DNA from: Carpediemonas membranifera BICM
Lineage: Eukaryota > Protista > Fornicata
Assembly (NCBI GenBank): GCA_019828565.1
Contig: JAHDYR010000004.1
Coordinates: 310,001 to 374,000, forward strand
Direction of reading: 5' to 3'
DNA length: 64,000 bases
Shown here: positions 1,159-58,823 of the stretch, piece by piece
How the letters are laid out: each line of letters begins with the position of its first letter
Position numbering within the stretch: the stretch's first letter is position 1
Made by a program: the position numbers and the translations under genes
The notes under the pieces: generated by a model
What the model was told of the DNA's origin: nothing
The model's input: the letters and a program-made list of their open reading frames with translations, nothing else
Databases searched by the model: none

Positions 1159-1234
1159 GCACCCTTAACCCACAAAGTGACGCGCCCAACAACAGCACCC
1201 ACCGTATCGAACCACTAAGCCCCACACCATTTAC

Positions 1235-34867: not shown

Positions 34868-35449
34868 AAGTCAGGCCCGACGAGGGCGGTGTGAAACCCG
34901 TCATTGACATCGTCTGCTCGGACTACGTCTCCGACGCGCGGGCTGATAAGGTGAAGCAGTATCAGCACTTCAACGTTGATATGGTGCCTGCTGTTGTCAG
35001 TTCGAGCGGCCGTTGCGCGCCCTGGAAGGCTGGCGGTGTGCCCTGGCCAGAGAGGCTGGTCGAGATGAAGCTGCTGGACAACGCGGCCAAGGATCGTCTC
35101 GTGGACCGGGTTTTCGTTGCCAATTGGAAGTGGCAGTGCAGAGCCATCGTGGATTGGCTGACACAAGCCCAAGCTGCTCGCGAACGCGCGGCTGCTGCTG
35201 GGCAGGACATTGTGAGTGAGTAAGAACGGGAATACCACAACATTTCGCTGTTTTGATCTCACTTTGGTTACTTTCGTTGTCTTTTTGCGGAGAAGTAGCT
35301 CCTTTCAAGGAGTTTTGGTACGTTTTGTGCGAGTGGATGCGTGAAATTGCGCAAAATCGAGCCTTGGTGCTCAGATGCGCGCTGCTGCTCAAAGTGAACG
35401 CAAATCGTGTTCCTTTACGCCGTTTAACGCAGTAAGCCGCGAGAGCGCC
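34868..35449 (+). mobile_element. 5'-truncated copy of the CRE-like non-LTR retrotransposon (RLE C-terminus plus 3' UTR)
   Basis: Essentially identical to 42176-42756. Confidence 0.92.
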
Positions 35450-35472
35450 ATCGACGACCGAGTCGGAGTCAA
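35450..35472 (+). repeat. Target fragment T-left (23 bp), a copy of the tRNA-Arg downstream flank 53763-53785; also at 42757-42779
   Basis: ATCGACGACCGAGTCGGAGTCAA is exact in three places. Confidence 0.95.
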
Positions 35473-35837
35473 GAGCAGCACTCGACCAGGGCACCCGGGG
35501 TGCTGAGGGTCGGAGGGTCCCGCGGGGAGCGCGGGCCGGAGACTATTGATCGTTGGATTGATTCGACCAGATGTGCAGGATATGGCAGAATTCGAAAGAT
35601 GCCCGAAGAAGACACGGGCACGCCCAAGGCAGAGGGTCCCGAACGACGGACCTGCCTCGTCTCGCGAGGAACGCGGGAAACGAAAGAAGACGCTGAATAT
35701 TTACGCGGAGAGACAGGAAATCCGAGTAAATATTATTCCCCCCCATTTGGATATGAGTTAGGATGCGAGCACCACTCGAGCCCATTGGCACCCGGGGTGC
35801 TGAGACGCCCGAGAGGGCGCACGGAAACGTGCAGTTT

Positions 35838-36410
35838 ATGGCATCAGAATTTCGAATGCCCGAAGGCACATCGGGCACGTCCGCAGAACCTCCTGTATCC
35901 CAGGAAGAGTTCCGAAAGTTTACCAACAACGTAACTGCCACATTGGAGTTCATGAAAACGAAGATGGAGAACATCGAGGAAAGATCCATCCAGAGGGAGG
36001 TAGAACAAGAAGAGTACGAGCTAGAAACCGATGAGCAAGCAACCCAGGGAACCTTCCAAGGCTTTCCGTCCTTCTTGTTCGATTTGGAGCTCCCCAAGAG
36101 GTACGGGCCCCGCGACGAAGCCAAGTTCCTACGCGAGATCATGCGTCTCCTGACGACCGCGGACCCGCACTCACTCGACGTGAACGATCTACTGCTCCGT
36201 CTCCTGAGCCGGTTCAAGGTCCTTCTCCTCAAGGACGACTACGACGACAACGTCTGTGACTACGCCACTGCAGCCCTGCGAGCCACGCCCCCGAAGTCTG
36301 AGATGGAGATCGAGACGATCCTCGCTAAGGCCAAGACTAAGGGCAAGCGTAAGCGTCGGAATTTTCAGGAGCAGGGCTCCAGCAGCGTCGGCCGCCGGGC
36401 CCGCTCCTAA
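35838..36410 (+). CDS. PAT-A gag-like ORF1 (copy 1)
   Basis: LFDLELPKRYGPRDEAKF is homologous to PAT-B LFLEMPKRFGLEDEARF; basic C-terminus. Confidence 0.75.
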   Translation: MASEFRMPEGTSGTSAEPPVSQEEFRKFTNNVTATLEFMKTKMENIEERSIQREVEQEEYELETDEQATQGTFQGFPSFLFDLELPKRYGPRDEAKFLREIMRLLTTADPHSLDVNDLLLRLLSRFKVLLLKDDYDDNVCDYATAALRATPPKSEMEIETILAKAKTKGKRKRRNFQEQGSSSVGRRARS

Positions 36411-36439
36411 TATTCCCATCAACCCGTTCGCGATGGCGG

Positions 36440-38341
36440 GTGTGGGAACAATTCAGGGTAGCTCCAGCAGTAGTAGCGCGGGTACGAGACGGAATCCCCG
36501 TCGAGATCACAGCGCCTCCACCACCGGCAGCCCCACAGAGGACCATCGACCCGAGGATACTTCCGAAGCTCGAATCAATGACACAACAAGGAATCATCGA
36601 GCCGACGCCCCTCAGTCAGCTCAAGCACAGCGCCCCGCTGTTTGCTGTCCCCAAGGGGGAAGACATAAGAGTGATCCACGACCTGAGGCGGCTGAACACG
36701 GTCACACGCGAACGCCGCTCCTTCCGTCTGTTCGGCATACGTCGTGCCATCAACACACTCTCCAGCCAGGCCTGGATGGCCAAGATAGACCTAAGATCCG
36801 GCTACTCACAGCTGGCCATCAGAGACTCGGACAAACCGCTCCTGGGCATCGCTCTGCCCGACGGTCGGGCGTTCCAATACCGCACGCTAGGCTTCGGTTG
36901 GACCGCCGCGCCTTATTTCTTCCAGTCCGCTATGGTCCAGGTAGCAAAGGTCATCGCCCTCCGCCACAAGGTAATCGTCAACGTCTACCTCGACGACTTC
37001 TTACTGTCAGCCGACAGCAGAGACCACCTCAGCAAGGAAATACCCAAGATCATCAAGACGATGGAGGCACTGGGCCTCATCCCGTCGCTGGAGAAGTGCA
37101 TCTTAACACCGTGCCAGTGCATAGAATTCCTTGGCCTGCTCCTGAACACCACGTCCAACACCATCCGTCTCCCCCGCCGACAAGGCCAAGAGGTACGCAG
37201 AGGCCCTATCAGAAGCACTCGTCAAGAAGCGCATCCGCGCGAAAGACTGGGCGAAGATCGTAGGCAAGCTCTCCTTCTTCGCCACCTCTGCAAGACGGGC
37301 TACCCTGAAGCTCCGCACGCTCCCCTCTGCCACGGAGAACTGGGTCGACATCCACCCCTACACAGCAGACCTCAAGGAGTGGCTGCAGCTCCTGGCCGTC
37401 CGACCAACCCGCTCCTTCGCCGAGTTGAAGAACCTATGGTCTCAGGACCAGCAACTAGAGCTGATTATTTCCACAGATGCGTCGGGCACAGGCTGGGGAG
37501 CCCAGTGGACCAACACGTCCGCGAACTCCCACGGTTCTTTCAAGGGCGCACTGGCGGAACAATCTATCAACGTGAAGGAGCTCGCCGCAGTCCTCTTTGG
37601 CTCACGCATCATACCAGCACAGGACTCAGAGCGCAATCTCACGGTCTTCTCAGACAACAGCTCGTGCGTCGCCTGGATCAACAAGGAGGGCAGCTCAAAG
37701 GCCCCCCGATGGCGCTACAGACACTCAGGATACTCTACAAGGAGATGGAACGCAAGAAGCTCCTCATACACGCTCGACACACCCCAGGCCACCTCAATCT
37801 CGCCGCAGACCGACTGTCACGCGGGTTGTCCACCCCACCCCACGTGCTGGAGACAATTCTCGAGACTTGGGGCCCCGTCGACGTGGACGCTACAGCACAC
37901 CCAGACCGCACTCTACGCCTCCCAGGGTTTACCATCGAACACTGGCCGGACGGCCTGTTCAGGAACTGGCGCGGACACCGCGTTTATGCCGCGCCACACC
38001 CGTCCCCGATGACCTTGGGACGGACATGGCAGACCCTCCTACCGATCTTAACGACCCCGACTACATCCCCTCCGAACTCGTGGACCTCAGCATGCTTCCT
38101 CGTCGTGCCAGACATTACGAGCCCCGAACTCCAACAACTCAAGGCGCACGCGACATGCAAGATTCCCTTCTCAGTACCGAAAGACGACTTCGCATCAGAG
38201 GACCAACAACTCCTAGACCGTCTCTCCAGGCCAAACGGGACCATCCGCTTCATAGCTCTCGCCTTCAGGACACGTTCTCCAGAATCCTGCAGCACCCAAT
38301 ACTGTCTCACATGCGCCGAGACGAGTCCAAGCGCTCAGTAG
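36440..38341 (+). CDS. PAT-A RT, RNase H and degenerate methyltransferase-like domain (two compensating frameshifts)
   Basis: RVIHDLRRLN, KIDLRSGY, GFGW, YLDD, EFLG. The RNase H motifs STDASG..WGA, INVKEL and SDN lie in another frame (ORF 37425-38012) between C-runs at 37171 and 37702; then HTPG..NLAADRLSR. Confidence 0.9.
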   Translation: MWEQFRVAPAVVARVRDGIPVEITAPPPPAAPQRTIDPRILPKLESMTQQGIIEPTPLSQLKHSAPLFAVPKGEDIRVIHDLRRLNTVTRERRSFRLFGIRRAINTLSSQAWMAKIDLRSGYSQLAIRDSDKPLLGIALPDGRAFQYRTLGFGWTAAPYFFQSAMVQVAKVIALRHKVIVNVYLDDFLLSADSRDHLSKEIPKIIKTMEALGLIPSLEKCILTPCQCIEFLGLLLNTTSNTIRLPRRQGQEVRRGPIRSTRQEAHPRERLGEDRRQALLLRHLCKTGYPEAPHAPLCHGELGRHPPLHSRPQGVAAAPGRPTNPLLRRVEEPMVSGPATRADYFHRCVGHRLGSPVDQHVRELPRFFQGRTGGTIYQREGARRSPLWLTHHTSTGLRAQSHGLLRQQLVRRLDQQGGQLKGPPMALQTLRILYKEMERKKLLIHARHTPGHLNLAADRLSRGLSTPPHVLETILETWGPVDVDATAHPDRTLRLPGFTIEHWPDGLFRNWRGHRVYAAPHPSPMTLGRTWQTLLPILTTPTTSPPNSWTSACFLVVPDITSPELQQLKAHATCKIPFSVPKDDFASEDQQLLDRLSRPNGTIRFIALAFRTRSPESCSTQYCLTCAETSPSAQ

Positions 38342-39178
38342 CCGGATGGATTACAGCATTCATCCTTGAGTACCGCGACCCACACGAGGACGACACCGAT
38401 GAGTACCGAGCCTTCCTGGAGGACGAGGCCGAGTATAATGCACCAGCCACGGTCGATCGAAAGGGATACTGGATCGAGAAGGCCGCCCCACTCTTTTCCG
38501 ACTGGACCCCCAGCACCTACTGTCCACAAATCAGAAGAGGCATAGCAGACAACGCCAACACCACCGGCATGACAGGCGGGTCAGCCCCAGTCACAAGGGG
38601 AGGACATGATCAGGGCCATCAAGTCCAGGAACAGCGACATCGCGACGTACCAAGCGACACTATTCGCCGCGATTGCTTACCTGACCGTGAGCCGCGGAGC
38701 TGAAATCTTCAACCTGACGAGCGCTGACATCGTGTTCAAGACAAACGGGGACGCCCAGCTGCTCCTTGGTCGCACAAAGACGCTTGCAAAGGTCACTAAG
38801 TCACTACCCAACACCCTACTAGGCCCATTCAACCCAGCGCTGGCCCTGAAGAGATGGGTACGAGGCTTGAACCTTCCACCGGACGCCTGCATCTGGCGCG
38901 CGATCACATCCTCATCGAAGGTCAGCCGTAAGACCCCGTGCACAATGCGACGTATGCGAGAGGAGCTACGCACAGTCTTCCACGACAACAGGATTGGCCT
39001 ACACAGCTTCCGCAAGGGAGCGGCTTCCGAACTGGCACTAGCAGGCACACCGATAGAGACCTTACTCCAACTCGGAACCTGGGCTAACGGCAACTCTCTC
39101 CGGCCTTACATCGGGGAGGCTATCCGCAACCACCCTCGTCAAACCCGACAAACTGCAACCTTACCTTACCTTACCTAG
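37597..39178 (+). CDS. PAT-A tyrosine recombinase (copy 1, 1-nt frameshift in G-run near 38597)
   Basis: SRGAE, RTKT, HSFRKG, GTW, RPY. Confidence 0.9.
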
Positions 39179-39193
39179 CTAGGATACTCTAGC

Positions 39194-39231
39194 CGACCGC
39201 AAAGAGTGATATAAAAATTCGAGCGATGCAG
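39194..39231 (+). repeat. Target fragment T-right (37 bp): tRNA 3' flank, terminator and last 12 nt of tRNA-Arg (antisense); also at 46498-46534, original at 53786-53822
   Basis: CGACCGCAAAGAGTGATATAAAATTCGAGCGATGCAG; this copy has one extra A. Confidence 0.95.
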
Positions 39232-42200
39232 CATCAGAGAATGTCGGTAGATCACCGACGATCACAAGAAGGAGGTGGGAGAATCATCTTCACAAGGTCT
39301 CCTGATGTGCCTGGTGGTACATTAGGGATCCAGGAGGAGCTTCTCCACGTTATCTCCGAAATCCGCAAAAATTTCGCACAATACGTCCCTGATGAGGTCG
39401 TGAACGACTTCAACAGTAATCAGGAACTTATTTGACGCTTTGCAGAACGAAGCAAACGTTAGAACTTGGCTTGGAGACGGGAAGTCCCGTAAGAACAAAC
39501 GTCTGACTCTCGCAAAACTGCGGGAGATCCTCGACAGAATTCGTGCAGTTGCCGTGGCATACGAGGGTCGCAATGCGCCCAACGTCACGAAGTCTCGCAT
39601 GACAATGATCGATACAGCGCCTGCTCATGCAGCCGAAGTCGTGAGGACTGTCGCCCGGATCGCTGGTGCGCCTGTTGGGTCAACCGACACCGCCCGCGCC
39701 CTCAGCCCTTCACCCCAGACTCAGTCTGCCCCCGTCCCCCGCCCGCCGATTCCGAGCCAACCGCCGGCTCCGAGTCAGACCCCTCAACGCCCAGCAAGCC
39801 AGGCAAGCGAGGGCCCGTCCAGCGTTACACTCGACGCGTCCCAGACGCCAGAGTTCAATCAGCGCAGAGCGACGGCCCCCGTCCGCCCAGACTGTTTCCT
39901 CGACCCAGCGAAGGCCCTCTTCCTGGGTAAGCTCGCCCACCCAAGCGCCGTCGCGCCGGGTTCGCGGAGGGCTTGATCAGCCGCCTGAAGGCAATCGCCG
40001 ACGCCGAAGGCACGGACGCCAAACTTGCTGCCGCCGCGAGACTGTGCTCGTACGCGCAGACCTTGTACGCACCCCCGAAGGTCTCGGCTCGCAGGCCGAG
40101 AGCCAACCGCACAAGGCGCGCGTGGAACTTGGCCATACGTGGCTTCATCTCCAAGGCAGTGACAACGATCACGGGGTCGGAGACGACCCTCACGCCTGAC
40201 GAGATCAATCAGTCTCTGAAGGAGAAGCTGTCTTCTCCGACAGGGCTTGTGCCGAACATATCCCTCCCCGACGTGCCGGCGAACCCGCTCAGTGCCATCA
40301 CGGTCTCGCGCAAGCAGATCAAGGCCGCACTCATGAGCCTTTCGCCGGAATCCGCCCCTGGACCGTCGGGCCTGTCAGCGCTACACCTGCGCATTGCCGC
40401 GAGCGTGAGGCGTGGAGACCTCGTAGCCGCCTTGGAGCCTGTCTTGCAGGACATCCTGGACGGTGAGGAGTACACGTCGATCTTCGCACACGCGATCCTG
40501 GTGCCGGTGCCGAAGGATTGCGGTGGGGTCCGCCCTGTCGCAATAGGCGAGGTGCTGCGCCGGCTGGCGGCTAAGGTCGCCGCAACAGTCGTCTTCCCAA
40601 GGCTTGTCGTCGAGGATGAGTTGATGGGGGACCAATTCGGGCTTGGCGAATCAGCCGGCCTGGAGCGGCTGGCGACGGCCACGCTGAACGAGTACATGAA
40701 CGGGAGCACCATCGTGACGTTGGACATGTCCAACGCGTATGGCACGATGTCCCGAGATTATCTCGTGAAGGTGGTCGAGGCATATATTCCCGTACTCGGC
40801 CCCTACCTCCGCCGAATGTACGCCAGCGGCTTGCTGCTGACGACGACTGGCGAGGTGTGGGCCTCGGAGGAGGGCATCCACCAGGGTGATGCTCTCTCCC
40901 CACTCCTCTTCTCGCTGGGCATGTTCCCTCTGCTGACGCAGTTGCGCGGGGAATTCCCGGACTTCACTGTTCGCGGATACCAGGATGACGTTTCGGCGTC
41001 CATCCCGAGCCCCCTGCAAGACTACGAGACGGGCCGGAAGGCGAATTCATTCGTCTCTCGGTCGGAGCAGCTCTTTGCGAGTGTTGGGATGCCGTTGAAC
41101 CGGTCCAAGTGTGCGGTCGCTCATCGCGAGTCGCGGGACGACAACAACGCTTCGGACCAGGTGACGCGGGCGCAGTCTTTCAAGCTGGTGGGTATCCCCA
41201 TCTCCGTCTCCTCAGCCTTCCACGTTGAGTGCTGTACCAAGATCCTGAAGAAGGTGAAGGCCGTGCTCGACGCCGCCAAGGAGTTCTGCCGGGAGATCGG
41301 GTCGAAGGCCACGGCGGTGGCTCTGACGATTGTCAGGGTGTCTGCGCTCACCATCCCCATACATTTCTACCGCAACGTTCTCCCCACGATCAAGTCTACC
41401 ACAGGCCAGGGCAATTTGCTGGGCAAGACGGCCGTCTTTGAACGGCAGTGTATTGCCCCAGCCGTCTTGGACATCCTGCAAGACAAGATCACCGATGCGG
41501 AAGAGATGAAGAAGTTCTGCCGGCGGCTAGGGCTGCCGGTGCATGCGGGCGGTCTCGGCTTGCCGATGCCGCTCGATGTCTGGGCTCCCGCCTACCTGGG
41601 GGCCTCCCGGCATCTGCTGGAGTTTGGCCTCAGCCGGCCCGACCTGGATAAGGTCCTCGCGCTGGGCGCCAACGTGAAGGATTGGCCCAAGGATGAGGCA
41701 GCGCTGAAGGCGGTCGGCAAGGACAAGCCGCAGCACGAGTTGGTGTGCCTGTTGAAGGAACATAATTTCAACACCAACCCTGCGGTGAAGGACAGCGTCG
41801 TCGCGCCCAACATCATCAGCGCTATGCTCAAGTCCGACCCAGTCTCTGTCACGAGGCAGTCGAACCGCCACGAGGTCGACCGGGCCATGATCGCCGACCA
41901 CCTGGGCCGGCCCGCCTTTAGCGACGCGGCTGGAGTGTGCCCGATCTGCTCTGAGAAGCACAGTCGTACTGTGGCTATGAAGGGCTGGTCGCACGCGGTG
42001 GTGTGCCCGTGCCTACGCGGTGACGCAAAGGTGCAGCGGCATGACGCCATCCGGGACGAAGTGATCAGGACCCTCAAGGAGGAGGGCGTGGCAGCCAGGC
42101 CTGAGAGGTGGCTGACGCCGAAGTCTGCAGAGGCGAAGCATCCTTTGCGGCCGTACAGAGTGCGCATGGACGTCGAAGTCAGGCCCGACGAGGGCGGTGT

Positions 42201-42756
42201 GAAACCCGTCATTGACATCGTCTGCTCGGACTACGTCTCCGACGCGCGGGCTGATAAGGTGAAGCAGTATCAGCACTTCAACGTTGATATGGTGCCTGCT
42301 GTTGTCAGTTCGAGCGGCCGTTGCGCGCCCTGGAAGGCTGGCGGTGTGCCCTGGCCAGAGAGGCTGGTCGAGATGAAGCTGCTGGACAACGCGGCCAAGG
42401 ATCGTCTCGTGGACCGGGTTTTCGTTGCCAATTGGAAGTGGCAGTGCAGAGCCATCGTGGATTGGCTGACACAAGCCCAAGCTGCTCGCGAACGCGCGGC
42501 TGCTGCTGGGCAGGACATTGTGAGTGAGTAAGAACGGGAATACCACAACATTTCGCTGTTTTGATCTCACTTTGGTTACTTTCGTTGTCTTTTGCGGAGA
42601 AGTAGCTCCTTTCAAGGAGTTTTGGTACGTTTTGTGCGAGTGGATGCGTGAAATTGCGCAAAATCGAGCCTTGGTGCTCAGATGCGCGCTGCTGCTCAAA
42701 GTGAACGCAAATCGTGTTCCTTTACGCCGTTTAACGCAGTAAGCCGCGAGAGCGCC
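39232..42756 (+). mobile_element. CRE-clade-like non-LTR retrotransposon (RT plus restriction-like endonuclease), copy 1
   Basis: Single reconstructed ORF of about 1095 aa, about 225-nt 3' UTR, no poly(A); flanked by tRNA-derived target sequence. Confidence 0.92.
39241..42531 (+). CDS. CRE-like ORF: RT, CCHC knuckle, RLE (frameshifts near 39430 and 39940)
   Basis: SAPGPSG, VRPVAIGEVLRRL, QFGLG, LDMSNAY, GIHQGDALSPLLF, YQDD, LNRSKC, GGLG, CPIC...HAVVC, RHD, RMD, DIV, K..Y. Confidence 0.9.
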
Positions 42757-43142
42757 ATCGACGACCGAGTCGGAGTCAAGAGCAGCACTCGACCAGGGCA
42801 CCCGGGGTGCTGAGGGTCGGAGGGTCCCGCGGGGAGCGCGGGCCGGAGACTATTGATCGTTGGATTGATTCGACCAGATGTGCAGGATATGGCAGAATTC
42901 GAAAGATGCCCGAAGAAGACACGGGCACGCCCAAGGCAGAGGGTCCCGAACGACGGACCTGCCTCGTCTCGCGAGGAACGCGGGAAACGAAAGAAGACGC
43001 TGAATATTTACGCGGAGAGACAGGAAATCCGAGTAAATATTATTCCCCCATTTGGATATGAGTTAGGATGCGAGCACCACTCGAGCCCATTGGCACCCGG
43101 GGTGCTGAGACGCCCGAGAGGGCGCACGGAAACGTGCAGTTT

Positions 43143-43715
43143 ATGGCATCAGAATTTCGAATGCCCGAAGGCACATCGGGCACGTCCGCAGAACCTCCTG
43201 TATCCCAGGAAGAGTTCCGAAAGTTTACCAACAACGTAACTGCCACATTGGAGTTCATGAAAACGAAGATGGAGAACATCGAGGAAAGATCCATCCAGAG
43301 GGAGGTAGAACAAGAAGAGTACGAGCTAGAAACCGATGAGCAAGCAACCCAGGGAACCTTCCAAGGCTTTCCGTCCTTCTTGTTCGATTTGGAGCTCCCC
43401 AAGAGGTACGGGCCCCGCGACGAAGCCAAGTTCCTACGCGAGATCATGCGTCTCCTGACGACCGCGGACCCGCACTCACTCGACGTGAACGATCTACTGC
43501 TCCGTCTCCTGAGCCGGTTCAAGGTCCTTCTCCTCAAGGACGACTACGACGACAACGTCTGTGACTACGCCACTGCAGCCCTGCGAGCCACGCCCCCGAA
43601 GTCTGAGATGGAGATCGAGACGATCCTCGCTAAGGCCAAGACTAAGGGCAAGCGTAAGCGTCGGAATTTTCAGGAGCAGGGCTCCAGCAGCGTCGGCCGC
43701 CGGGCCCGCTCCTAA
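43143..43715 (+). CDS. PAT-A gag-like ORF1 (copy 2)
   Basis: Identical to copy 1. Confidence 0.75.
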   Translation: MASEFRMPEGTSGTSAEPPVSQEEFRKFTNNVTATLEFMKTKMENIEERSIQREVEQEEYELETDEQATQGTFQGFPSFLFDLELPKRYGPRDEAKFLREIMRLLTTADPHSLDVNDLLLRLLSRFKVLLLKDDYDDNVCDYATAALRATPPKSEMEIETILAKAKTKGKRKRRNFQEQGSSSVGRRARS

Positions 43716-43744
43716 TATTCCCATCAACCCGTTCGCGATGGCGG

Positions 43745-46482: not shown

Positions 46483-46534
46483 CTAGGATACTCTAGCCGA
46501 CCGCAAAGAGTGATATAAAATTCGAGCGATGCAG

Positions 46535-49500: not shown

Positions 49501-50061
49501 GGTGTGAAACCCGTCATTGACATCGTCTGCTCGGACTACGTCTCCGACGCGCGGGCTGATAAGGTGAAGCAGTATCAGCACTTCAACGTTGATATGGTGC
49601 CTGCTGTTGTCAGTTCGAGCGGCCGTTGCGCGCCCTGGAAGGCTGGCGGTGTGCCCTGGCCAGAGAGGCTGGTCGAGATGAAGCTGCTGGACAACGCGGC
49701 CAAGGATCGTCTCGTGGACCGGGTTTTCGTTGCCAATTGGAAGTGGCAGTGCAGAGCCATCGTGGATTGGCTGACACAAGCCCAAGCTGCTCGCGAACGC
49801 GCGGCTGCTGCTGGGCAGGACATTGTGAGTGAGTAAGAACGGGAATGCCACAACATTTCGCTGTTTTGATCTCACTTTGGTTACTTTCGTTGTCTTTTGC
49901 GGAGAAGTAGCTCCTTTCAAGGAGTTTTGGTACGTTTTGTGCGAGTGGATGCGTGAAATTGCGCAAAATCGAGCCTTGGTGCTCAGATGCGCGCTGCTGC
50001 TGAAAGTGAACGCAAACCGTGTTCCTTTACGCCGTTTAACGCAGTAAGCCGCGAGAGCGCC
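46535..50061 (+). mobile_element. CRE-like non-LTR retrotransposon, copy 2
   Basis: Near-identical to copy 1 apart from small indels and 3 SNPs in the 3' UTR (49847, 50002, 50017). Confidence 0.92.
46544..49836 (+). CDS. CRE-like RT-RLE ORF, copy 2 (several 5' frameshifts; 47551-49836 open)
   Basis: Same motifs as copy 1. Confidence 0.88.
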
Positions 50062-50142
50062 TCCTGTCACAGGACCATCACTGGCACCTGCGCGCGCCGA
50101 TCAATGTGCACTTTAGGTCACACTTCGAAACGCATCGGCAGG

Positions 50143-50625
50143 ATGTCTGATAACGAAGACCTGCCGCCGCAAGACAGTCCCGATGAGCTTAACAAGCGTA
50201 TCGAGAAGCTGGAGCGCTTGGTTAAGATACAATCGGAAGCAATTTTGGAGCAGCAAGCAGAAGCAGCTCGCCGTCCACTGTTCCTGGAGATGCCAAAGAG
50301 GTTCGGCCTCGAAGATGAGGCCAGATTCGTATACAAGACCATGAATAGGATCGAGAACGGCGCAAAGATGAAGGAGATCGGGAACATTCTCTTTGCAAGA
50401 ATCCAGTACCTTCTAATCAAGGACGTGTACACTGACGCTACTGCAGAGCGGTTCGAGAACTATTGCAAGGCGAAGGGCGTGCCTGATCGCGACGAGGTCC
50501 TGGAACTGGCGGCCCGCGCCAAGTCTAAGGGCGATAAGCGCGACGCTAATTTTCGCCGCGGTGGCCGCGCTCAGGACCGAGGTCGCACTCAGACAGGATC
50601 CTCCGGCAAGAGAGCCCACACCTAA
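50143..50625 (+). CDS. PAT-B gag-like ORF1
   Basis: ATG immediately after repeat A1; homologous to PAT-A ORF1. Confidence 0.78.
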   Translation: MSDNEDLPPQDSPDELNKRIEKLERLVKIQSEAILEQQAEAARRPLFLEMPKRFGLEDEARFVYKTMNRIENGAKMKEIGNILFARIQYLLIKDVYTDATAERFENYCKAKGVPDRDEVLELAARAKSKGDKRDANFRRGGRAQDRGRTQTGSSGKRAHT

Positions 50626-50635
50626 CCCTCTTTCC

Positions 50636-53311
50636 ATGCATGAACGCGGCGTGGAGGGAGTGGCAGAGGTTGGGAGCATCACAACGGGTGATCAACTGGT
50701 TACGATACGGGGTCGAGATCCGTCTGAGAAGTCAACCACCAGCACCAAGGCAACAGCCGACAGTCGACCCATTCATTGTCCAGCAGATTCCTTCCTTGAT
50801 AGAGACAGGCGTCATAGAGCAAGTGAATCCCTCTTCCCTGCGACACACCGCCTCGCTGTTTACTGTGCCGAAGGGCGAGTCGAAGAGGATCATTCACAAC
50901 CTCACGATACTGAACGACTGCTCGGCAGAGCGCTCATCCTTCCGGCTCTACGGTCTGCGCAGAGCTCTCTCCCTTCTCCAGAGGGGCGACTGGATGGTCA
51001 AGTTCGACCTCAAGTCCGGGTACCATCAAGTACCAGTACGGAAGGAGGACCGCAAGCTGCTAGGAGTCTATCTTCCAGACGGACGAGCGTTTCAGTACAG
51101 AGTGCTAGGCTTCGGCTGGCGCGCATCGCCGTTCGTGTTTCAGACGATCACCAACCAACTCGCCAAGATACTAGCCCTTCGGACGGGTCTTACCATCGTT
51201 GTCTACCTCGACGACTTCCTCTTATTTCACCGCGACCGAGAAATCCTGAGGAGGGCGGTGCCGCGCATCAGGCGGACTCTAGCCGACCTCTGTGTCCTCA
51301 CCTCAGAGGAGAAGTCAGAATGGGCACCGACTCAGTCATTGGTCTATCTGGGGCTCGTGATAGACTCCGCGAGTTTTACAATACGCCTCCCGGCGGACAA
51401 GGCCAAACGTTACTCCTCTCACATTCATCAGGCTCTGGCAGGCAAGACCATCGATCAGGAGACTTGGGCCAAGATCCTCGGGAGACTGACTTACTTCGCT
51501 ACAACCGCCCACGGGGCTTTCCTCCGGCTGAGACACCTTCAACAGGACCCACTCTCCAAGGAGCTACTGCAAGAGTGGCTGCTACTGCTAAGAGAGCGCC
51601 CAGTCCGAGACATCAGAGAACTTCAGTCGCTTTGGGGCGCTCACCCCTCCTTAGACCTCGTCGTATCGACAGACGCATCTGGAGTCAAGTGGGGAGCAGC
51701 CGTGCACGGCGAGTATGGGACCTCAGCCTCGGGCACGTTCACTCCAGAACTAAGAGCAGAATCTATCAACGTGAAGGAGCTCGCGGGAATCCTACAGGGC
51801 ATCCGTCTGATCGGCAGACAGAGTTCCCAACGCGAGCTATCGATCTTCTCAGACAACACATCAGCTCTGGCCTGGCTCAACAAGGCGGGGTCTACGAAGG
51901 CTCCACCTCAGGCCCTGCACATTCTAGCCCAGATCCAGAAGGAGGCGGAGGACCGGAACCTGACACTCCGTGGACTACACACTCCGGGCATCATCAACCT
52001 GGCAGCAGATCGGCTGTCCAGAGGCTTCTCACGACTCCCTTCCTCTCTGGAGTCCAGCATGGAATCTGTCCTCGCGGAGTGGGGTCCAGTCCAGACAGTC
52101 TCAGCGGACGTAGACGTAAGGCTTGGATGTCGCGTCCTCTGGGCCCCCAATTCGTCTATGGCAGCCATAGTCCAGAAGATAGCGACAGCGAGAGTTCAGA
52201 CTCAGACTGGACACCCGAGGTCTTGGACCTCAGCAGTCTTTCTCCTCTACCCAGAGGTTCAAGCGCCGGAGATGAGACTCCTCAAGAGTTGGACGTCCTG
52301 GAAACTCCGTCTCTCCGTCCCGGCTTCGAGCTCAGATCTGGCCCACCTACTTCACCTACAGGACAGAGGACGCCTACGGTTCAATGTGATGGCGTTCAGG
52401 ACGTTTTCCACAGAGTCCTCAGGTCGGACAGAGTGATTCACCTTAATCACGCGTCTGCTCGGACGGTGGCCGGCTGGGTGGCCAGGTTCGAAGGCTCTCG
52501 CGATCGCAGCCTGTCGGATCGAGACCAGCTTGTAGCCTTCCTCAAGGACGAAGGCTCCTTCTGCGGGCCATCGAACGTGGCGAGGAAGGGCTACTGGATT
52601 GTTCAGCTACAGGAGTTCCTCAAAGACTGGCATCCGCCCGCCAACTCCAAGTACATCGTTAAGCAGGCGGCTAAGGGCGCCAGCACGGCGGGAACTACCG
52701 GCGGCTCGCGCGCCATCACCAAGGCTGAGATGATCGAGGCACTGGGGCGCCGGAGTGACGACTTTGAGTCATATCAGGCATGTCTCTTTGGGGCAGTCGC
52801 CTATCTGACGGTGTCCAGAGGCATCGAGATACTCTCCCTATGCCCGGCCGACCTGGAGCTACTCAAGAACGGCGACATTCTCCTACACATTCAGCGGACC
52901 AAGACCATCCTAACGGGAGTTAAGAAGCGCGTACCATACGTATGGCTATCAGCCGCCTTCAACCCGGCCTTGGCACTTAGACGCTGGGTCGAGGGCACAC
53001 ACTACCTGGCTGATGACACCCCCATCTGGCGAGTCATAGTCAACGGGCGCCTGAGCAGAGACAAACCGCTCACAGCCGCACACCTCCGACGAGTCGTGAA
53101 GGCGTTGCTCGGTCCACGGACGGGTCTCCACAGCTTCCGTAAGGGGGCAGCGTCGGAGATGGCTCTATCAGGAGTCCCGCTGGAGGTGATCCTCTCAATG
53201 GGCACATGGAAGGACGTCACCTCCCTCCGCAGCTATGTCGCTGACGCCATCAGAACAAACGAGGACCTCACCAGGAGGATGAACCTCAGCCTTCTCGGGC
53301 CCCACTTTTAA
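50636..53311 (+). CDS. PAT-B tyrosine recombinase ORF overlapping the whole pol ORF
   Basis: C-terminal SRGIE, RTKT, HSFRKG, GTW, RSY; the frame is stop-free from 50561. Confidence 0.92.
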   Translation: MHERGVEGVAEVGSITTGDQLVTIRGRDPSEKSTTSTKATADSRPIHCPADSFLDRDRRHRASESLFPATHRLAVYCAEGRVEEDHSQPHDTERLLGRALILPALRSAQSSLPSPEGRLDGQVRPQVRVPSSTSTEGGPQAARSLSSRRTSVSVQSARLRLARIAVRVSDDHQPTRQDTSPSDGSYHRCLPRRLPLISPRPRNPEEGGAAHQADSSRPLCPHLRGEVRMGTDSVIGLSGARDRLREFYNTPPGGQGQTLLLSHSSGSGRQDHRSGDLGQDPRETDLLRYNRPRGFPPAETPSTGPTLQGATARVAATAKRAPSPRHQRTSVALGRSPLLRPRRIDRRIWSQVGSSRARRVWDLSLGHVHSRTKSRIYQREGARGNPTGHPSDRQTEFPTRAIDLLRQHISSGLAQQGGVYEGSTSGPAHSSPDPEGGGGPEPDTPWTTHSGHHQPGSRSAVQRLLTTPFLSGVQHGICPRGVGSSPDSLSGRRRKAWMSRPLGPQFVYGSHSPEDSDSESSDSDWTPEVLDLSSLSPLPRGSSAGDETPQELDVLETPSLRPGFELRSGPPTSPTGQRTPTVQCDGVQDVFHRVLRSDRVIHLNHASARTVAGWVARFEGSRDRSLSDRDQLVAFLKDEGSFCGPSNVARKGYWIVQLQEFLKDWHPPANSKYIVKQAAKGASTAGTTGGSRAITKAEMIEALGRRSDDFESYQACLFGAVAYLTVSRGIEILSLCPADLELLKNGDILLHIQRTKTILTGVKKRVPYVWLSAAFNPALALRRWVEGTHYLADDTPIWRVIVNGRLSRDKPLTAAHLRRVVKALLGPRTGLHSFRKGAASEMALSGVPLEVILSMGTWKDVTSLRSYVADAIRTNEDLTRRMNLSLLGPHF
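50640..52436 (+). CDS. PAT-B RT-RNase H
   Basis: KFDLKSGYHQ, GFGW, YLDD, YLG, STDASG, INVKEL, SDN, NLAADRLSR. Confidence 0.95.
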   Translation: MNAAWREWQRLGASQRVINWLRYGVEIRLRSQPPAPRQQPTVDPFIVQQIPSLIETGVIEQVNPSSLRHTASLFTVPKGESKRIIHNLTILNDCSAERSSFRLYGLRRALSLLQRGDWMVKFDLKSGYHQVPVRKEDRKLLGVYLPDGRAFQYRVLGFGWRASPFVFQTITNQLAKILALRTGLTIVVYLDDFLLFHRDREILRRAVPRIRRTLADLCVLTSEEKSEWAPTQSLVYLGLVIDSASFTIRLPADKAKRYSSHIHQALAGKTIDQETWAKILGRLTYFATTAHGAFLRLRHLQQDPLSKELLQEWLLLLRERPVRDIRELQSLWGAHPSLDLVVSTDASGVKWGAAVHGEYGTSASGTFTPELRAESINVKELAGILQGIRLIGRQSSQRELSIFSDNTSALAWLNKAGSTKAPPQALHILAQIQKEAEDRNLTLRGLHTPGIINLAADRLSRGFSRLPSSLESSMESVLAEWGPVQTVSADVDVRLGCRVLWAPNSSMAAIVQKIATARVQTQTGHPRSWTSAVFLLYPEVQAPEMRLLKSWTSWKLRLSVPASSSDLAHLLHLQDRGRLRFNVMAFRTFSTESSGRTE

Positions 53312-53804
53312 CCACCCCCTCCATTAAACATCCGCGTTCGAGGGGAACGGCCGAGGCGAGACGGACTCGCCGGCCTGGATTCATCATTAATTCTTAACTC
53401 TGGTCGAGGCGAGATAGACTCGCCGGCCCAAAGCTTTAGTCCCACAGGGACGTCTTGCGGGATTGTCCCATTTTGGTTGGATTTAAGAGGAGGGCTCTCT
53501 GTTATAGAGCCACACTTTGTGGATCCTGTCACAGGACCATCACTGGCACCTGCGCGCGCCGATCAATGTGCACTTTAGGTCACACTTCGAAACGCATCGG
53601 CAGGTGTCGGAGCCGTTAGGACCTGACCGGACCGCGAGACGAGGATTTACCCGGGTCTGTCATAAGAGCTCGGGGAAGCCACCCGAAGTAAATACTCGCC
53701 CCCCCCCCATTTTGGTTGGATTTAAGAGGAGGGCTCTCTGTTATAGAGCCACACTTTGTGGAATCGACGACCGAGTCGGAGTCAACGACCGCAAAGAGTG
53801 ATAT

Positions 53805-53808
53805 AAAA
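53805..53808 (-). terminator. Pol III terminator (TTTT) of tRNA-Arg
   Basis: T4 run 2 nt downstream of the tRNA discriminator base. Confidence 0.6.
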
Positions 53809-53810
53809 TT

Positions 53811-53884
53811 CGAGCGATGCAGGACTCGAACCTGCAACCACCTGATCCGTAGTCAGGTACTCTATCCAATTGAGCCAACCGCCC
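53811..53884 (-). tRNA. trnR-ACG: tRNA-Arg(ACG)
   Basis: GGGCGGTTGGCTCAATTGGATAGAGTACCTGACTACGGATCAGGTGGTTGCAGGTTCGAGTCCTGCATCGCTCG folds as a cloverleaf; anticodon arm CCTGA-CTACGGA-TCAGG, T-arm GCAGG-TTCGAGT-CCTGC. Confidence 0.97.
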
Positions 53885-54090
53885 GGCATATCATCGATAT
53901 GTAAGCTATCACGCCTCGGGCGTGGCTCACGCCCTGACACTGCTGGGTCAGGGTGTGTCAGAACAGGATTCCGGAGACACGAGAAAGATGGACAAAATAT
54001 TTAGAAAATCTCGAAAGATATGATTGTGGATACGGTCTTGATCCGTCCCGATCGCGAGCAGATCGTATCCCTCCAGCAGAAACCGTGAGG

Positions 54091-54630
54091 ATGGCCGAAG
54101 GCGACGCGGATAACGCTGATCCGCCGCCTGTCACCATGGAGAGCCTTGCTGAGCTCATACAACAGCAGCAGAACGTCATTACGGCACTCCGTTCGGAGGT
54201 TTCATCGGTTAAGGACAGTACACGGGACCCGAGACGCCCGTCTCGGATAGGAGCCGTTGCTAAGGAGTACGACCACCTCCGCGAGACACTTGCCGACATC
54301 AGAGGTATCCTCAACAACCCGGAGATGACGCGCGTCAACCAGATCGAAGCCGCGATCGAGGCGGTCTTCGAGCGCAGACTCGAGTTCCTACGGCTATATG
54401 ACAGCCACTCCGACACCGCTGCGCGCTACTTCATGGCTATTTCGAGAGAAGAACGAGACGCGCAACGCTTCGTAGTGCTGGCCGCCAAGGCGGCCAAGGC
54501 CACCCCACCGCCTCCTCGACCCAAGCGGTTCCAGAGAGGCTTCGGCGGCTTCAGCCGCAACTCTCCCCGCTTCAACAACAACAACCGTCGTGCCCCGGCA
54601 ACCGACCTCGGACCGGGGCGGGCCCAGTAG
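54091..54630 (+). CDS. PAT-C gag-like ORF1
   Basis: First ORF of the element; coiled-coil N-terminus and R/G/N-rich C-terminus. Confidence 0.72.
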   Translation: MAEGDADNADPPPVTMESLAELIQQQQNVITALRSEVSSVKDSTRDPRRPSRIGAVAKEYDHLRETLADIRGILNNPEMTRVNQIEAAIEAVFERRLEFLRLYDSHSDTAARYFMAISREERDAQRFVVLAAKAAKATPPPPRPKRFQRGFGGFSRNSPRFNNNNRRAPATDLGPGRAQ

Positions 54631-54659
54631 AGGCCAGAGAAGGGTTAAGCCTGAACCCG

Positions 54660-57600
54660 ATGACTATAAAAGGCTCGATATACTTCGAAGAGTTTTATTG
54701 CAATGGAAAGAGAAGAAGCACAAGAAGATCAGCAAGACACCTCCACCCAGTGTATACAGGGGCTGACGGGCTCGATGAGCCGTCGGTGGATGAGGTGGCA
54801 GGCCCTCGGGGCCAGCAGGGAGGTGGTGCAGCTGTTACGAGAGGGAGTGAAGGTCACCCCGGCAGCACCGGCGCTCAATGCGCACCTCCAGAAGGAGACA
54901 GACACGATGAAGGCTCTACTAGAGGAGCTACTGCAACAGAAAGCAATAGAGAAGGGCGAGGCGACGACAATATGCCCCCTGTTCACATTAGAGAAGAAGA
55001 TCGCAGGCAGCTACCGTCTGATACACGACCTGAGACCGGTCAATGCATACCAAGAGGACCTAACATTCAGGCTGAAGGGCCTAGCAGAGATACAGCATGG
55101 AGTTCCGAGAAACTCGTGGGGAATAACATTGGATATGAAGTCCGGGTACTACCAGCTCCTAGTGGAGGAGAACTCACGACAGGAACTCGGATTCTCGTTC
55201 GAGGGAGAACAATACAGATGGAGAGGACTCCCTTTCGGCCTCTCAACGGCGCCACGGCAGTTTCAGTCGGTTACGTCACAGATGGCGAAGATCCTGCGCT
55301 CACTTCTCGAAGGACTGATAATATACGTGTATCTGGACGATCTGCTCATAATCAGTCGCTCGAGAGAGTCGTTGAACGCCCAGGTCCCACGGATCTTAGA
55401 GATCTTGGACTCACTTGGAGTCGTCCTATCGAGAGAGAAGTGCCACTTGACCCCGTCCCAGAGGGTAACTTACTTGGGCGTGATAGTCGACTTGCGCGAG
55501 ATGACGATGTCGCTGCCAGAGGAGAAGAGGGCTCAATACAGCAGACTCATAGCCAACCTGCAACTCAAGAGACACACAAAGCGGGACCTTCAGACCCTTC
55601 ACGGAAAGCTCCTCTTCTGCCGGTTCGCACTGGGGACGCGGGCACTTGTCCGGCTCAGAGAGCTGCAGGTCAGGATCGCTGGCTGCGACGACCGAGTGCG
55701 GTACCCAAAGTCCAGCCTGCCCCAGGACCTACGAACGGATCTGCGGTGGTGGGCCAGACAGCTATCATCCGATCCGGCATGGTACTTCGGCCCAAGAGGC
55801 CAGGTACTTCGTATGGAGACCGACGCGTCGGACTATGCGTTCGGTGCGACGCTGTTTGTCGAAGACACGTCCCTCAACATCCAGGGCAGGTTCTCAGAGG
55901 CACAATGCTCCAAGAGCATCAACGCGAAGGAGCTATGGGCAATGGAGGAAGGCCTGCGGAGATGGACGAGCGACATTCAGGAGAGGGACCTACTCATAGC
56001 CGGGGACAACACATCAGCGCTTTCATGGGTCCTGAAGTCAAGCACCAGAGCTCCCCGACACATCAGAAGGACGATTGTGGAGCTTCACGACTACTTGTTC
56101 GAGATTGGCTGCAGGATAAGAACCAAGCACATTCCAGGGAGATACAACACGACTGCCGACGGGCTGTCCAGGTACCGGAAGCTGGACTGGAACTCACCCG
56201 CGGCGATGCTCCAGAGCGCGCTGGAACGATGGGGGTCAGTAGACCGATCACTCTTCTGCGCGGAGAGATTCCTGCCGGAGGACCACGACTTCCAGACGGA
56301 CGCATTTACATGCAATTGGTCAGAGATGAGGTCATTGGCGGTCCCACCAGTCAGCCTACTGGACAATGTCATCGCCAGGGCGGAGGAGATCGCCACGTCA
56401 GACGAGACGCACCCCGCACTGCAGCAGAGAGGCCTATTAGTCATCGCACCACAACGCAGGACGAACTCCAATGCCAGACTGGCAGCCATAGCACAGGACT
56501 GGTTCGAGGCAGCGTTCCCGATCAGCTGGTGGGCCCACACGGAGATAGAGAGCCTCTTCACAGGCAAGCAGAGAGCGACGTTCATAGCCTACTGGATCCC
56601 GATCGCCACAGAGACCTCGTCCTCACAGCCGGGGGAGTCCTGCAACAGAGAGCGAGAGAACGTATCGCCGGCGGAAGACAGGAGGAGCACAGGTGGCGAA
56701 GAAGCCCCAGAGAGTTCGAGACAGGCCTCAGAGATCAGATACTCGGAGCAGCACTCATCAGGGATCGGGAGCGGAGCACCCGAGAGCGCATAGCCGTGGA
56801 GACGGCAAAGTACATCAGTTTTGCAGAACGTATGATGGAGGAAGAGGAGGAAGCTGGAGAGAACAGAGACACGGTAGGAGCAAGGGCAGCAACAGCCGTT
56901 TTCCTGGGCGAGATGGCACAACGCATTAGGGACGCAGACTGGAGAGCAGAAGTCGAAGAGATCGCACAGATGGCACCTGACGACGACTATCTCCTACACT
57001 ACATGATACAAGAGATCCCATTCATTGCCAAGGACACATTCCTCGTCAAGGAAGCAAATATCAGGACCATGGTCTGGAGAGCTCACCCATCCACAGGGCT
57101 CTGATACGCGCGTGTGCAAGAATGGCCGGCAAATACGAGCTGACTGTGGGTCGTAAGACCGGAAAGGCATACCCGGTGACAGTCGAGCAGCTGAAGAGAG
57201 CAGCAGCCGCGGCGCGCAAGACCAAGTCACCGGCGCTCACGCAGGCAGTAGCCTTCGGACTGACGTGCTTCTCCACCGTCAGCAGATCAGGGGAGATAAT
57301 GAGCTTACTCACGACCGACGTTCGGCGGGTGAGAGAGGGCTACGAGATCACTATTCGAAGATCCAAGACCAGGGATGAGCCCATGGTGAAGCTGATCCCA
57401 CTACTAGCAGCAGGAGGCTTAAGCCCAGCCAGGTGGCTGAGAGCACACCTCAACGACATCCAGACGGAAGGACCCCTGTGGAGATCCATACAGCACACCG
57501 AGAGCCTGCTGAGAGACAACTGCCTTCCACTGACAGCAACAAGGTGGCGCAGATGGGAGATGATCATGGACGTCAACGAGGTCTTCAAGGCAACAGGACA

Positions 57601-57757
57601 CAGCTTCAGACGTGGAGCCGTCGTCCACATGATCGATGAAGGGCGTTCCCCATTGGTTATTCAGGCACTAGGAGGCTGGAAGTCGATCGATTCGGTGAAT
57701 AGATACTGTGAAGAGGCCATTCGAATCTCACAGCATGCTCTACAGAGAAGAACATAG
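54660..57757 (+). CDS. PAT-C tyrosine recombinase ORF (overlaps pol; 1-nt frameshift near 57090; catalytic part 57122-57757)
   Basis: SRSGE, RSKT, HSFRRG, GGW, RY. Confidence 0.85.
54703..56793 (+). CDS. PAT-C RT, RNase H and methyltransferase-like domain
   Basis: RLIHDLRPVN, LDMKSGY, LPFGLSTAP, YLDD, ETDAS, INAKEL, GDN, HIPG..NTTADGLSR; WGSVDRSLF...DAF..NW...AVPP. Confidence 0.95.
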   Translation: MEREEAQEDQQDTSTQCIQGLTGSMSRRWMRWQALGASREVVQLLREGVKVTPAAPALNAHLQKETDTMKALLEELLQQKAIEKGEATTICPLFTLEKKIAGSYRLIHDLRPVNAYQEDLTFRLKGLAEIQHGVPRNSWGITLDMKSGYYQLLVEENSRQELGFSFEGEQYRWRGLPFGLSTAPRQFQSVTSQMAKILRSLLEGLIIYVYLDDLLIISRSRESLNAQVPRILEILDSLGVVLSREKCHLTPSQRVTYLGVIVDLREMTMSLPEEKRAQYSRLIANLQLKRHTKRDLQTLHGKLLFCRFALGTRALVRLRELQVRIAGCDDRVRYPKSSLPQDLRTDLRWWARQLSSDPAWYFGPRGQVLRMETDASDYAFGATLFVEDTSLNIQGRFSEAQCSKSINAKELWAMEEGLRRWTSDIQERDLLIAGDNTSALSWVLKSSTRAPRHIRRTIVELHDYLFEIGCRIRTKHIPGRYNTTADGLSRYRKLDWNSPAAMLQSALERWGSVDRSLFCAERFLPEDHDFQTDAFTCNWSEMRSLAVPPVSLLDNVIARAEEIATSDETHPALQQRGLLVIAPQRRTNSNARLAAIAQDWFEAAFPISWWAHTEIESLFTGKQRATFIAYWIPIATETSSSQPGESCNRERENVSPAEDRRSTGGEEAPESSRQASEIRYSEQHSSGIGSGAPESA

Positions 57758-58823
57758 AAATATAGGACATAAGAGAGCATTGTAGCGATAAAGGGAGATG
57801 AAACGGAACGAGGGGAGAAGAAACAGGCAAGAGCTAGAGAAATGGATGTTTCTCGGATTCGGAACAGGAATTACATATGCCACGTATAACCGGCACAGAA
57901 GGTCATAAGTGCAGTAGAGGAAGGCCCAGGGTACCATCGCAAGGTTAGATGGCGGGATGCATCAATTTGGAATAGTCGATTATCGTCGACCAAATGGTCG
58001 TGTATGTCATCGATATGTAAGCTATCACGCCTCGGGCGTGGCACACCCTGACACTGCTGGGTCAGGGTGTGTCAGAACAAGATTCCGGGGACACGAGAAA
58101 GATGGTCAAAATATTTAGAAAATCTCGAAAGATATGATTGTGGATACGGTCTTGATCCGTCTCGATCGCGAGCAGATCGTATCCCTCCAGCAGAAACCGT
58201 GAGGATGGCTGAAGGCGACGCGGATGACGGGCCAAGGCCACCAAACGGAGATAAATTTGATCTAATCAATTTGGAATAGTCGATTATCGTCGACCAAATG
58301 GTCGTTAAAGGTTTAGATCTCTCATTTTATATGCAGCAATGACGATTTGAAATGATGGTCTGACAAGCTAACGCCTGGAATGACAAACCCGAATAGAGCG
58401 GGAGTGAATAATCGTGCCGACTGACGGGTCTTGGGTGCGGCATTCTGTAAGTAAGTTACCTCCCAGCCTGGAGCCAAGGAACACTCCTTATCACAACGCC
58501 TGTCCCCGCATGTCACGTCGTCAGCCCACACTCACTGGTTGGACGGTGTTCACTCCGGAGGGTGACTCAGACAGGGTGTTAGGACACCGATATATTGTAG
58601 TCAATATTAATATCTACAAATATCCCCGTGAGGGTCCTAACCTCGTTTTACTTGTAAACCTATCTCTTCCAAGACTACAGTACTAGTACTTTCCCGATGG
58701 ATAGAGACGGGAAGAACCAAGCACCGCTACTCAAGGAAGCTACTTTTGTCATAAGGCATCCACGTCCGCAGTTTATGTAAATGTTCCAATCTCTTCGCCC
58801 CGGCACAGTGATCACTTTCCGAA

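Follow-up and report, generated by a model that had tools for sequence, protein, structure and literature searches.

The genome of the protist Carpediemonas membranifera contains six tRNA-Arg(ACG) loci that very probably act as landing pads for retrotransposons of two unrelated kinds, namely tyrosine-recombinase elements that dock at a certain position relative to tRNA genes and a long interspersed nuclear element (LINE) with a restriction-like endonuclease (RLE) that is specific for tRNA-Arg(ACG). One of these loci lies in the stretch studied here, positions 310001-374000 of contig C5 (64 kb in total, hereafter the window), where the single tRNA gene is accompanied by members of four families designated PAT-A, PAT-B, PAT-C, and CRE-like. 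Docking beside tRNA genes is a genome-wide habit and not a one-off pile-up in the window. The tyrosine-recombinase elements occupy defined positions in a defined orientation next to tRNA genes of many species, and their junctions are blunt.

Four retrotransposon families at one tRNA-Arg(ACG) gene

The only tRNA gene of the window, tRNA-Arg(ACG), was identified by ARAGORN at 53810-53885 on the minus strand and scored 60.6 bits against Rfam RF00005, exceeding the cut-off. It is intact and is immediately followed on its 3' side by a TTTT run, the terminator, within a 47-bp trailer (53763-53809, minus strand) common to all six tRNA-Arg(ACG) loci. Together, the trailer and the gene form the intact 123-bp target, 53763-53885.

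All elements of the array are located on the plus strand, that is, antisense to the tRNA. The first part of the array comprises a 5'-truncated CRE-like LINE represented by its last 582 bp (34868-35449, equivalent to positions 2945-3525 of a full copy), a copy of target bases 53763-53785 (35450-35472, 23/23 identical), the first PAT-A copy (35473-39193), a copy of target bases 53786-53822 with one additional A (39194-39231), consisting of trailer and the last 12-13 nt of the tRNA, and a full CRE-like copy (39232-42756). The second part contains the same two target pieces (42757-42779 and 46498-46534, the latter 37/37 identical) around the second PAT-A copy (42780-46497), then a second full CRE-like copy (46535-50061), PAT-B (50062-53762), the intact target with the tRNA gene, and PAT-C (53886-58305). 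The repeated target bases were located by self-comparison and by a short-word search with the tRNA flank. Self-comparison also revealed a tandem unit of 7,308 bp, in which 34868-42756 is repeated at 42176-50061 with 99.8% identity, together with an extra 582 bp.

Removal of the elements restores a single target. The joined pieces reconstitute 53763-53822 with zero bases gained or lost, and the position of every family relative to the tRNA gene can be read from the junctions. PAT-A was inserted between target positions 53785 and 53786, 24 nt past the tRNA 3' end, and PAT-B terminates at 53762, 47 nt past it. Two CRE-like 3' ends (those of the truncated copy and of the first full copy) meet 53763-equivalent bases and one meets the 5' end of PAT-B, while the CRE-like 5' end abuts 53822-equivalent bases, 12-13 nt within the tRNA. 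PAT-C begins at 53886-53888. The first-pass annotation had proposed that four families share this landing site, all antisense to a tRNA that keeps its terminator, and direct reading of each junction bore this out. Its placement of PAT-C against the tRNA 5' end also held, with an offset of 0-2 nt. The downstream position given for PAT-A is correct for the target site, but both PAT-A copies of the window reside in dead spacers carrying only the final 12-13 nt of the tRNA and not beside the live gene.

PAT-A, PAT-B, and PAT-C are tyrosine-recombinase (DIRS-order) retrotransposons with split direct repeats in a PAT/Ngaro-like layout. The name PAT is only a label kept from the first reading and does not place them phylogenetically relative to Ngaro, DIRS, or VIPER. 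The open reading frame (ORF) of the first PAT-A copy at 36440-38341 matched the reverse transcriptase (RT) family RVT_1 with 72 bits. Pfam alone did not detect an RT in the pol ORFs of PAT-B (50561-53311) and PAT-C (54660-57104), and tblastn aligned both with the PAT-A RT at 32%-34% identity (E values of 1e-36 to 1e-99). The Phage_integrase family was matched by PAT-B (28.2 bits) and PAT-C (41.8 bits) above the cut-off of 27.1; in the element domain search no integrase family match was obtained at E values up to 5. A region homologous to the tyrosine recombinase (YR) ORF of PAT-C (57122-57757) is present in the PAT-A copy at locus L031, and the polyproteins of the PAT families align mutually across the RT and recombinase regions.

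The repeats of PAT-B consist of an 86-bp A and a 57-bp B arranged as A1...B1-A2-B2 (A1, 50062-50147; B1, 53467-53523; A2, 53524-53608; B2, 53706-53762). PAT-C has a 228-bp A repeat (A1, 53888-54115; A2, 58004-58229) and a short B repeat located before A2 and at the 3' end of the element; its ends were set by comparison of genome copies, and an additional ORF1 is located at 53953-54630. The 3' end of PAT-A has a B-A-B structure, and PAT-A copies with the A1...B1-A2-B2 layout of the PAT/Ngaro type occur in the genome. Target-site duplications are absent: the target is restored exactly around PAT-A, and the junction of the CRE-like element with the flank is restored exactly around PAT-B.

The PAT-A copies of the window are chimeric. 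Only positions 295-3686 match other PAT-A copies of the genome, while the first 294 bp and the last ~19 bp derive from a family that is ~70% identical. This form was found only as the two window copies, which differ from each other by no substitution and two indels, and its last ~15 nt coincide with the 3' terminus present beside tRNA-Asn at locus L008. A short CCTTA-type repeat precedes the 3' end of both chimeras.

Judging from the relatives that were looked up, almost all of which came from C. membranifera, PAT-B appears to be a very isolated retroelement lineage. Its pol is 100% identical to the NCBI protein J8273_0207 of C. membranifera, and an exhaustive search of 1.8 billion representative proteins yielded only 97 weak matches to the polyprotein at E ≤ 0.001. 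A metagenome scan returned no relatives, and a word-based protein search returned only the protein of C. membranifera itself. The 13-kb contig carrying a relative in Aduncisulcus paluster contained no tRNA, which, as a single contig, carries little weight. In public reads, a small share of the stretch was covered in only one run, including one 353-bp contig on the PAT-B recombinase region, which speaks neither for nor against expression. Some PAT-B copies stop exactly at B1 (position 3462) and lack A2-spacer-B2 (loci L045, C24:37367-40828; L046, C24:151692-155153; and L022); their length is what one opened circle would be expected to have. Solo units of A-spacer-B are present as well, for example, beside tRNA-Gly at locus L020.

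Docking beside tRNA genes across the genome

Docking was counted in a sample of 44 tRNA genes with sequence in hand. The 5' terminus of PAT-C or of families C2, E, or F was located 0-4 nt upstream of 21 of them. At 27 genes docking was downstream: at 21 of them a tyrosine-recombinase element from one of six families has its 3' terminus 9-74 bp away, and at six (Arg and Thr) the docked element is an RLE LINE. At least 10 families dock at tRNA genes, so the four families named in the first-pass annotation all dock but are an undercount. Two modes are distinguished: in the upstream mode (PAT-C, C2, E, and F) the 5' end of the element lies 0-4 nt before the gene, and in the downstream mode (PAT-A, PAT-B, A2, D, D2, and G) the 3' end lies 9-75 bp behind it.

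The three PAT families of the window show these modes at other loci of the genome as well. The PAT-B 3' end is followed 20-81 nt further on by an antisense tRNA T-loop motif at 20 genome sites, compared with 0 for a reversed-pattern control; with one further site having a 74-bp gap, PAT-B adjoins 21 or more tRNA genes from many species, and the gap between its 3' end and the tRNA ranges from 9 to 74 bp. Among 14 sequenced PAT-B 3' ends, nine adjoin nine different tRNA species, three another PAT-B 5' end, one is positioned behind a tRNA-Thr-specific LINE, and one against another element. The true 3' terminal motif of PAT-A occurs 29 times, with two occurrences per full copy, and in 11 of these cases, involving at least 11 tRNA genes, the motif stands 15-45 bp behind the tRNA. 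A model with fixed offsets for PAT-A and PAT-B was rejected in favor of these windows of 15-45 and 9-74 bp; both families dock downstream, as the first-pass annotation had it for the window, but elsewhere its single offsets are replaced by ranges.

The 5' terminal 25-mer of PAT-C was found 30 times, including the internal repeat. Five exact copies and one variant begin 0-2 nt from the tRNA +1 position of Arg, Phe, Ile, Lys, Ser, and Leu genes. Other sampled PAT-C 5' ends come after the 3' ends of other elements, as expected if later arrivals displace older copies outward. A seventh PAT-C (locus L010, C63:895402) adjoins a 14-nt tRNA fragment, apparently the start of a tRNA-Ala gene. After these 14 nt the tRNA-Ala-like gene breaks into unrelated sequence, so that it was destroyed by another event.

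Wherever blastn matched one of the four window families at up to 400 bp from a tRNA, the match was antisense to that tRNA, and protein-level matches were likewise, except where two tRNAs face each other. With a generous assumption of 500 tRNA genes, the chance probabilities of the observed placement were 3e-45, 3e-30, and 3e-20. Transposons are densely packed in the window and are sometimes nested, so chance nesting in a gene-poor spot without any targeting could be imagined. The same families recur with the same offsets and orientation at tRNA genes elsewhere, dozens in number and from many species (chance 1e-20 to 1e-45), and the expectation that other copies lie at random distances from tRNA genes failed for all four families; this explanation can practically be dismissed.

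Random insertion followed by selection, with only tRNA-adjacent copies persisting in a compact genome, would agree with the small genome size and with tRNA flanks as plausible neutral space. It cannot yield the 0-2 nt offset of PAT-C, the strict antisense orientation, or the nucleotide-identical LINE junctions, and the copies, being 98%-100% identical, are too young for much purging. We consider it very improbable. Hardly more probable is that transduction or segmental duplication carried the tRNA genes along with the elements and that the adjacency is inherited. The two tRNA-Arg loci on C5 have a common PAT-C and distal flank, the Val/Phe pairs in loci L051 and L054 have common flanks, and all tRNA-Arg(ACG) trailers are essentially identical; on the other side, near-identical copies of one family occur at many tRNA species with unrelated outer flanks.

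The LINE of the tRNA-Arg(ACG) loci and its 60-bp repeat

The CRE-like element is an RLE-type LINE, with a C-terminal CCHC motif and a PD-(D/E)xK endonuclease recognized from invariant residues and a predicted structure. The term CRE-like is again a label and does not imply a clade assignment within the group of R2, CRE, NeSL, and R4. Its ORF (39973-42531 in the first full copy) matched RVT_1 at 54.8 bits, and its best relatives among solved structures were R2 proteins (E ~2e-6). The RLE domain had no sequence match among solved structures, either alone or as a profile. The C-terminal residues C, C, H, C, RH(D/N), D, D, and K are invariant across six RLE LINE families of the C. membranifera genome. 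The model predicted for the C-terminal domain (predicted local distance difference test values of 76-91 across the domain) had as its top fold matches among 48,161 chains the RLE of R2Tg (Z 10.4, root mean square deviation 2.5, 148 aligned) and the RLE of R2Bm (Z 10.3). The earlier assignment to RLE LINEs thus gained support at the level of fold. By eye, no Cys/His motif was seen in the first 100 residues of the ORF, and the region 39232-39972 preceding it contains stop codons in the frame tried.

Scoring of all 33 candidates yielded 12 near-identical CRE-like copies in the genome, of which 11 are at tRNA-Arg(ACG) loci, and each of the six tRNA-Arg(ACG) genes has such a LINE behind it, tail to tail. 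The 3' end of the element lies 48 bp from the tRNA at C24, C26, and C5:395 kb, while in the window and at C1 and C47 the LINE and the tRNA are parted by a tyrosine-recombinase element that arrived later. The 47-bp trailer is complete or nearly so at five of the six loci (one with a single base change); at C1 its proximal 33 bp are contiguous with the gene, and the remainder is displaced by an insert. Both the 3' and the 5' junctions are identical at C1, C24, C26, and in the window, and the 5' junction is always at the 53822-equivalent base, even in a 5'-truncated copy. The CRE-like LINE is a sequence-specific element of tRNA-Arg(ACG) loci; the first-pass annotation was right that it targets a tRNA, but this targeting is confined to tRNA-Arg(ACG) and is not general. 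The sole copy off these loci (C47:47939-51216) lacks the last 250 bp and has no recognizable target pieces nearby.

The second tRNA-Arg(ACG) locus of C5 is located at 394440-395192, 20 kb past the window end and inverted. It carries a solo PAT-C unit and shares its distal flank with the window locus; the two C5 loci are inverted segmental duplicates of one another. Other LINE families are specific for other tRNA species. LINEs specific for tRNA-Thr were found at four tRNA-Thr genes, and two more RLE LINE families are located upstream of, and in the same orientation as, tRNA-Ala AGC (loci L009, L020, and L049) and tRNA-Glu CTC (loci L044 and L050). In the latter two families the ORF ends at a constant distance of 214-216 bp from the gene, and the tRNA-side flank is identical between loci. 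With Arg, Thr, Ala, and Glu, the LINE families of C. membranifera that are specific for one tRNA species thus number at least four.

The 3' junction of the CRE-like element 47-48 bp behind the tRNA and the 5' junction 12-13 nt inside it mean that 60 bp are duplicated and the gene stays whole. We see about even odds that the LINE enters at a nick inside the tRNA with its own copy of the 60 bp, renewing the trailer and displacing older inserts. The alternative is that the 60-bp repeat arose as an ordinary target-site duplication, with nicks at two points 60 bp apart, and that unequal crossing-over produced the 7.3-kb tandem. Both junctions are fixed, tandem CRE-like copies at C26 are spaced by exactly 60 bp, and long target duplications are reported for trypanosomatid CRE/SLACS elements, all of which agrees with an ordinary duplication; the confinement of chimeric PAT-A to the two window copies likewise agrees with unequal crossing-over.

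Two observations speak against the ordinary duplication. With it, tyrosine-recombinase elements would hit dead DNA as often as live genes. They were found within LINE-LINE spacers, which contain only 12-13 nt of the tRNA, in the window (twice) and at C26, C47, C24, and C1, although elsewhere they require a live tRNA and show no sequence preference. Moreover, the two 60-bp copies around one LINE at C24 are not identical. Unequal crossing-over, in turn, has to accommodate LINE copies of the array that differ at four positions (99.77% identity), about as much as copies at different loci, next to PAT-A copies without substitutions. These observations agree better with LINE entry at the nick and a carried 60-bp copy, and the near identity of all six trailers also bears on this question. 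Overall, we place the combination of ordinary duplication and unequal crossing-over somewhat below even, as a serious alternative to entry with a carried 60-bp copy. A single block duplication of the 7.3-kb unit was also considered and is weakly disfavored, given the diverged LINE copies and the absence of substitutions between the PAT-A copies.

Proposed mechanism and comparison with known systems

The flanks adjoining the ends of the tyrosine-recombinase elements share no motif, and PAT-B has landed in native trailer sequence just as it has in the terminal bases of a PAT-A already in place or where a LINE meets the flank. Given this lack of common flanking sequence, the target would be a position relative to a gene transcribed by RNA polymerase III (Pol III) and not a sequence. 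A recombinase complex could sense where the Pol III gene lies, either by way of TFIIIB/TFIIIC or from the conserved promoter boxes inside the gene (A or B box), and recombine a circular copy of the element into the adjacent DNA. Repeated insertions would drive older copies outward and produce head-to-tail stacks. At tRNA-Arg(ACG) loci each new LINE copy may supply a clean trailer that tyrosine-recombinase elements hit again, which could generate the alternating array of the window. Since the tRNAs stay intact, a "safe harbor" reading of these sites appears reasonable on sequence grounds.

Of the two ways of reading position, direct binding of the recombinase complex to A box or B box DNA, without Pol III factors, is credible but clearly less than even in our estimate. 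In every tRNA, the tight upstream offset of 0-4 nt puts the element at a constant distance from the A box, and tyrosine recombinases are DNA-binding enzymes. Rfam found no other Pol III genes next to element ends in 20 tRNA-free loci; the lack of docking at other RNA genes there agrees with box binding, though none are present in these loci. Downstream offsets of 9-75 bp from a fixed B box fit a looser tether better, and tethering by Pol III factors may account for them.

Several points weigh against the proposed docking at Pol III genes and its scope. Tethering to Pol III factors is proposed purely by analogy, and PAT-type copies in dead LINE-LINE spacers need an additional assumption. By coordinates, one PAT-B copy on C8 (C8:27916, in the region 27811-30155) has its 5' end 32 bp behind a tRNA of the same orientation, the sole exception to the antisense rule seen. 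The sequence-level checks covered 60 loci, on contigs C63, C1, C6, C24, C26, C30, C19, and part of C39, ~29% of the genome, and other copies were judged from coordinates and pattern searches. The genome tRNA list is partial, with 63 of 497 candidates scored. Families E and F were assigned to the tyrosine-recombinase elements by RT similarity alone, and the docking habit was assessed in C. membranifera only. Finally, the two C5 loci being mutual duplicates, the number of independent tRNA-Arg(ACG) loci is below six.

With these points considered, we tentatively propose, at a level just short of even, the following full scenario. In a free-living metamonad, a whole radiation of tyrosine-recombinase retrotransposons would have evolved docking at Pol III genes without a shared target sequence, in two modes that are each specific to a lineage (at tRNA +1 and behind the terminator), and an RLE LINE would enter inside the tRNA-Arg gene and rebuild the 3' end and trailer of tRNA-Arg from carried sequence, resetting the landing pad.

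Targeting of tRNA genes is the textbook example of how transposons find safe sites in a compact genome. To our knowledge, it has so far been known for long terminal repeat (LTR) elements with DDE integrases and for endonuclease LINEs, and the integration of tyrosine-recombinase retrotransposons has never been resolved biochemically. If tyrosine-recombinase retrotransposons do target tRNA genes, they would represent an independent enzymatic route to the same solution, and docking would offer this poorly understood order a defined, predictable integration site for study. The interplay with a tRNA-Arg-specific LINE, if true, would be a rare example of how transposons of two classes can shape one another's target. 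A eukaryotic recombinase that places several kilobases at a set distance and orientation from a small portable landmark, without a target sequence, would also be of practical interest for site-directed integration.

Full-text literature searches found no tyrosine-recombinase retrotransposons at tRNA genes, while tRNA-specific RLE LINEs are already known. A review of tRNA-targeting retrotransposons covers LTR and LINE elements and lists no tyrosine-recombinase element as tRNA-targeted (PMC5006619), and the paper on the C. membranifera genome is silent on both tRNA genes and transposons (PMC8516963).

The closest counterparts of the CRE-like LINE are NeSL-1_TV (tRNA-Pro), from the metamonad Trichomonas, LIN15_SM (tRNA-Arg), and LIN25_SM (tRNA-Glu), which are RLE LINEs that each strictly target a single family of tRNA genes (PMC4640811). 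Their placement is close to the NeSL clade; the element described here differs in its 60-bp duplication, which includes the last 12-13 nt of the tRNA and keeps the tRNA whole. CRE1, CRE2, SLACS, and CZAR of trypanosomatids are likewise RLE LINEs at a constant position in a multicopy small-RNA gene (PMC12278014), but this is the spliced-leader gene and not a tRNA gene, and no Cys/His motif is seen at the N-terminus of the CRE-like ORF.

In their non-random placement and orientation at many different tRNA genes that remain intact, the elements described here behave like the functional class formed by Ty1, Ty3, TRE, and DGLT-A. Among elements that recognize any tRNA gene, Ty3 of Saccharomyces cerevisiae resembles PAT-C, C2, E, and F (0-4 nt from +1) in that it inserts upstream, a few nucleotides from the Pol III start, and leaves the gene intact (PMC5006619). 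It uses a DDE integrase and duplicates its target, in contrast to the tyrosine recombinase, absence of duplication, and one strict orientation observed here. TRE5, TRE3, and DGLT-A of Dictyostelium are position- and orientation-specific, upstream or downstream of any tRNA gene in a compact genome, and are of several origins (PMC5006619); the downstream windows of PAT-A and PAT-B resemble TRE3. Unlike the elements described here, they are LINEs with an apurinic/apyrimidinic-type endonuclease and a gypsy element.

DIRS-1, TATE, and VIPER have the same combination of RT and tyrosine recombinase and the same logic of terminal repeats, and some of them prefer their own copies or telomeric regions (PMC5006619, PMC12278014); Dictyostelium DIRS-1, for example, inserts into other DIRS-1 copies (PMC5006619). 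No report places any of them beside tRNA genes or at an offset of nucleotide scale from a host gene.

Tyrosine integrases of bacterial and archaeal phages and integrative elements also use a tRNA gene as a landing site, and the gene stays functional. They recognize a specific att sequence inside one tRNA gene, whereas in C. membranifera many tRNA species are used, the crossover is located outside the gene, and the flanks have no sequence in common.

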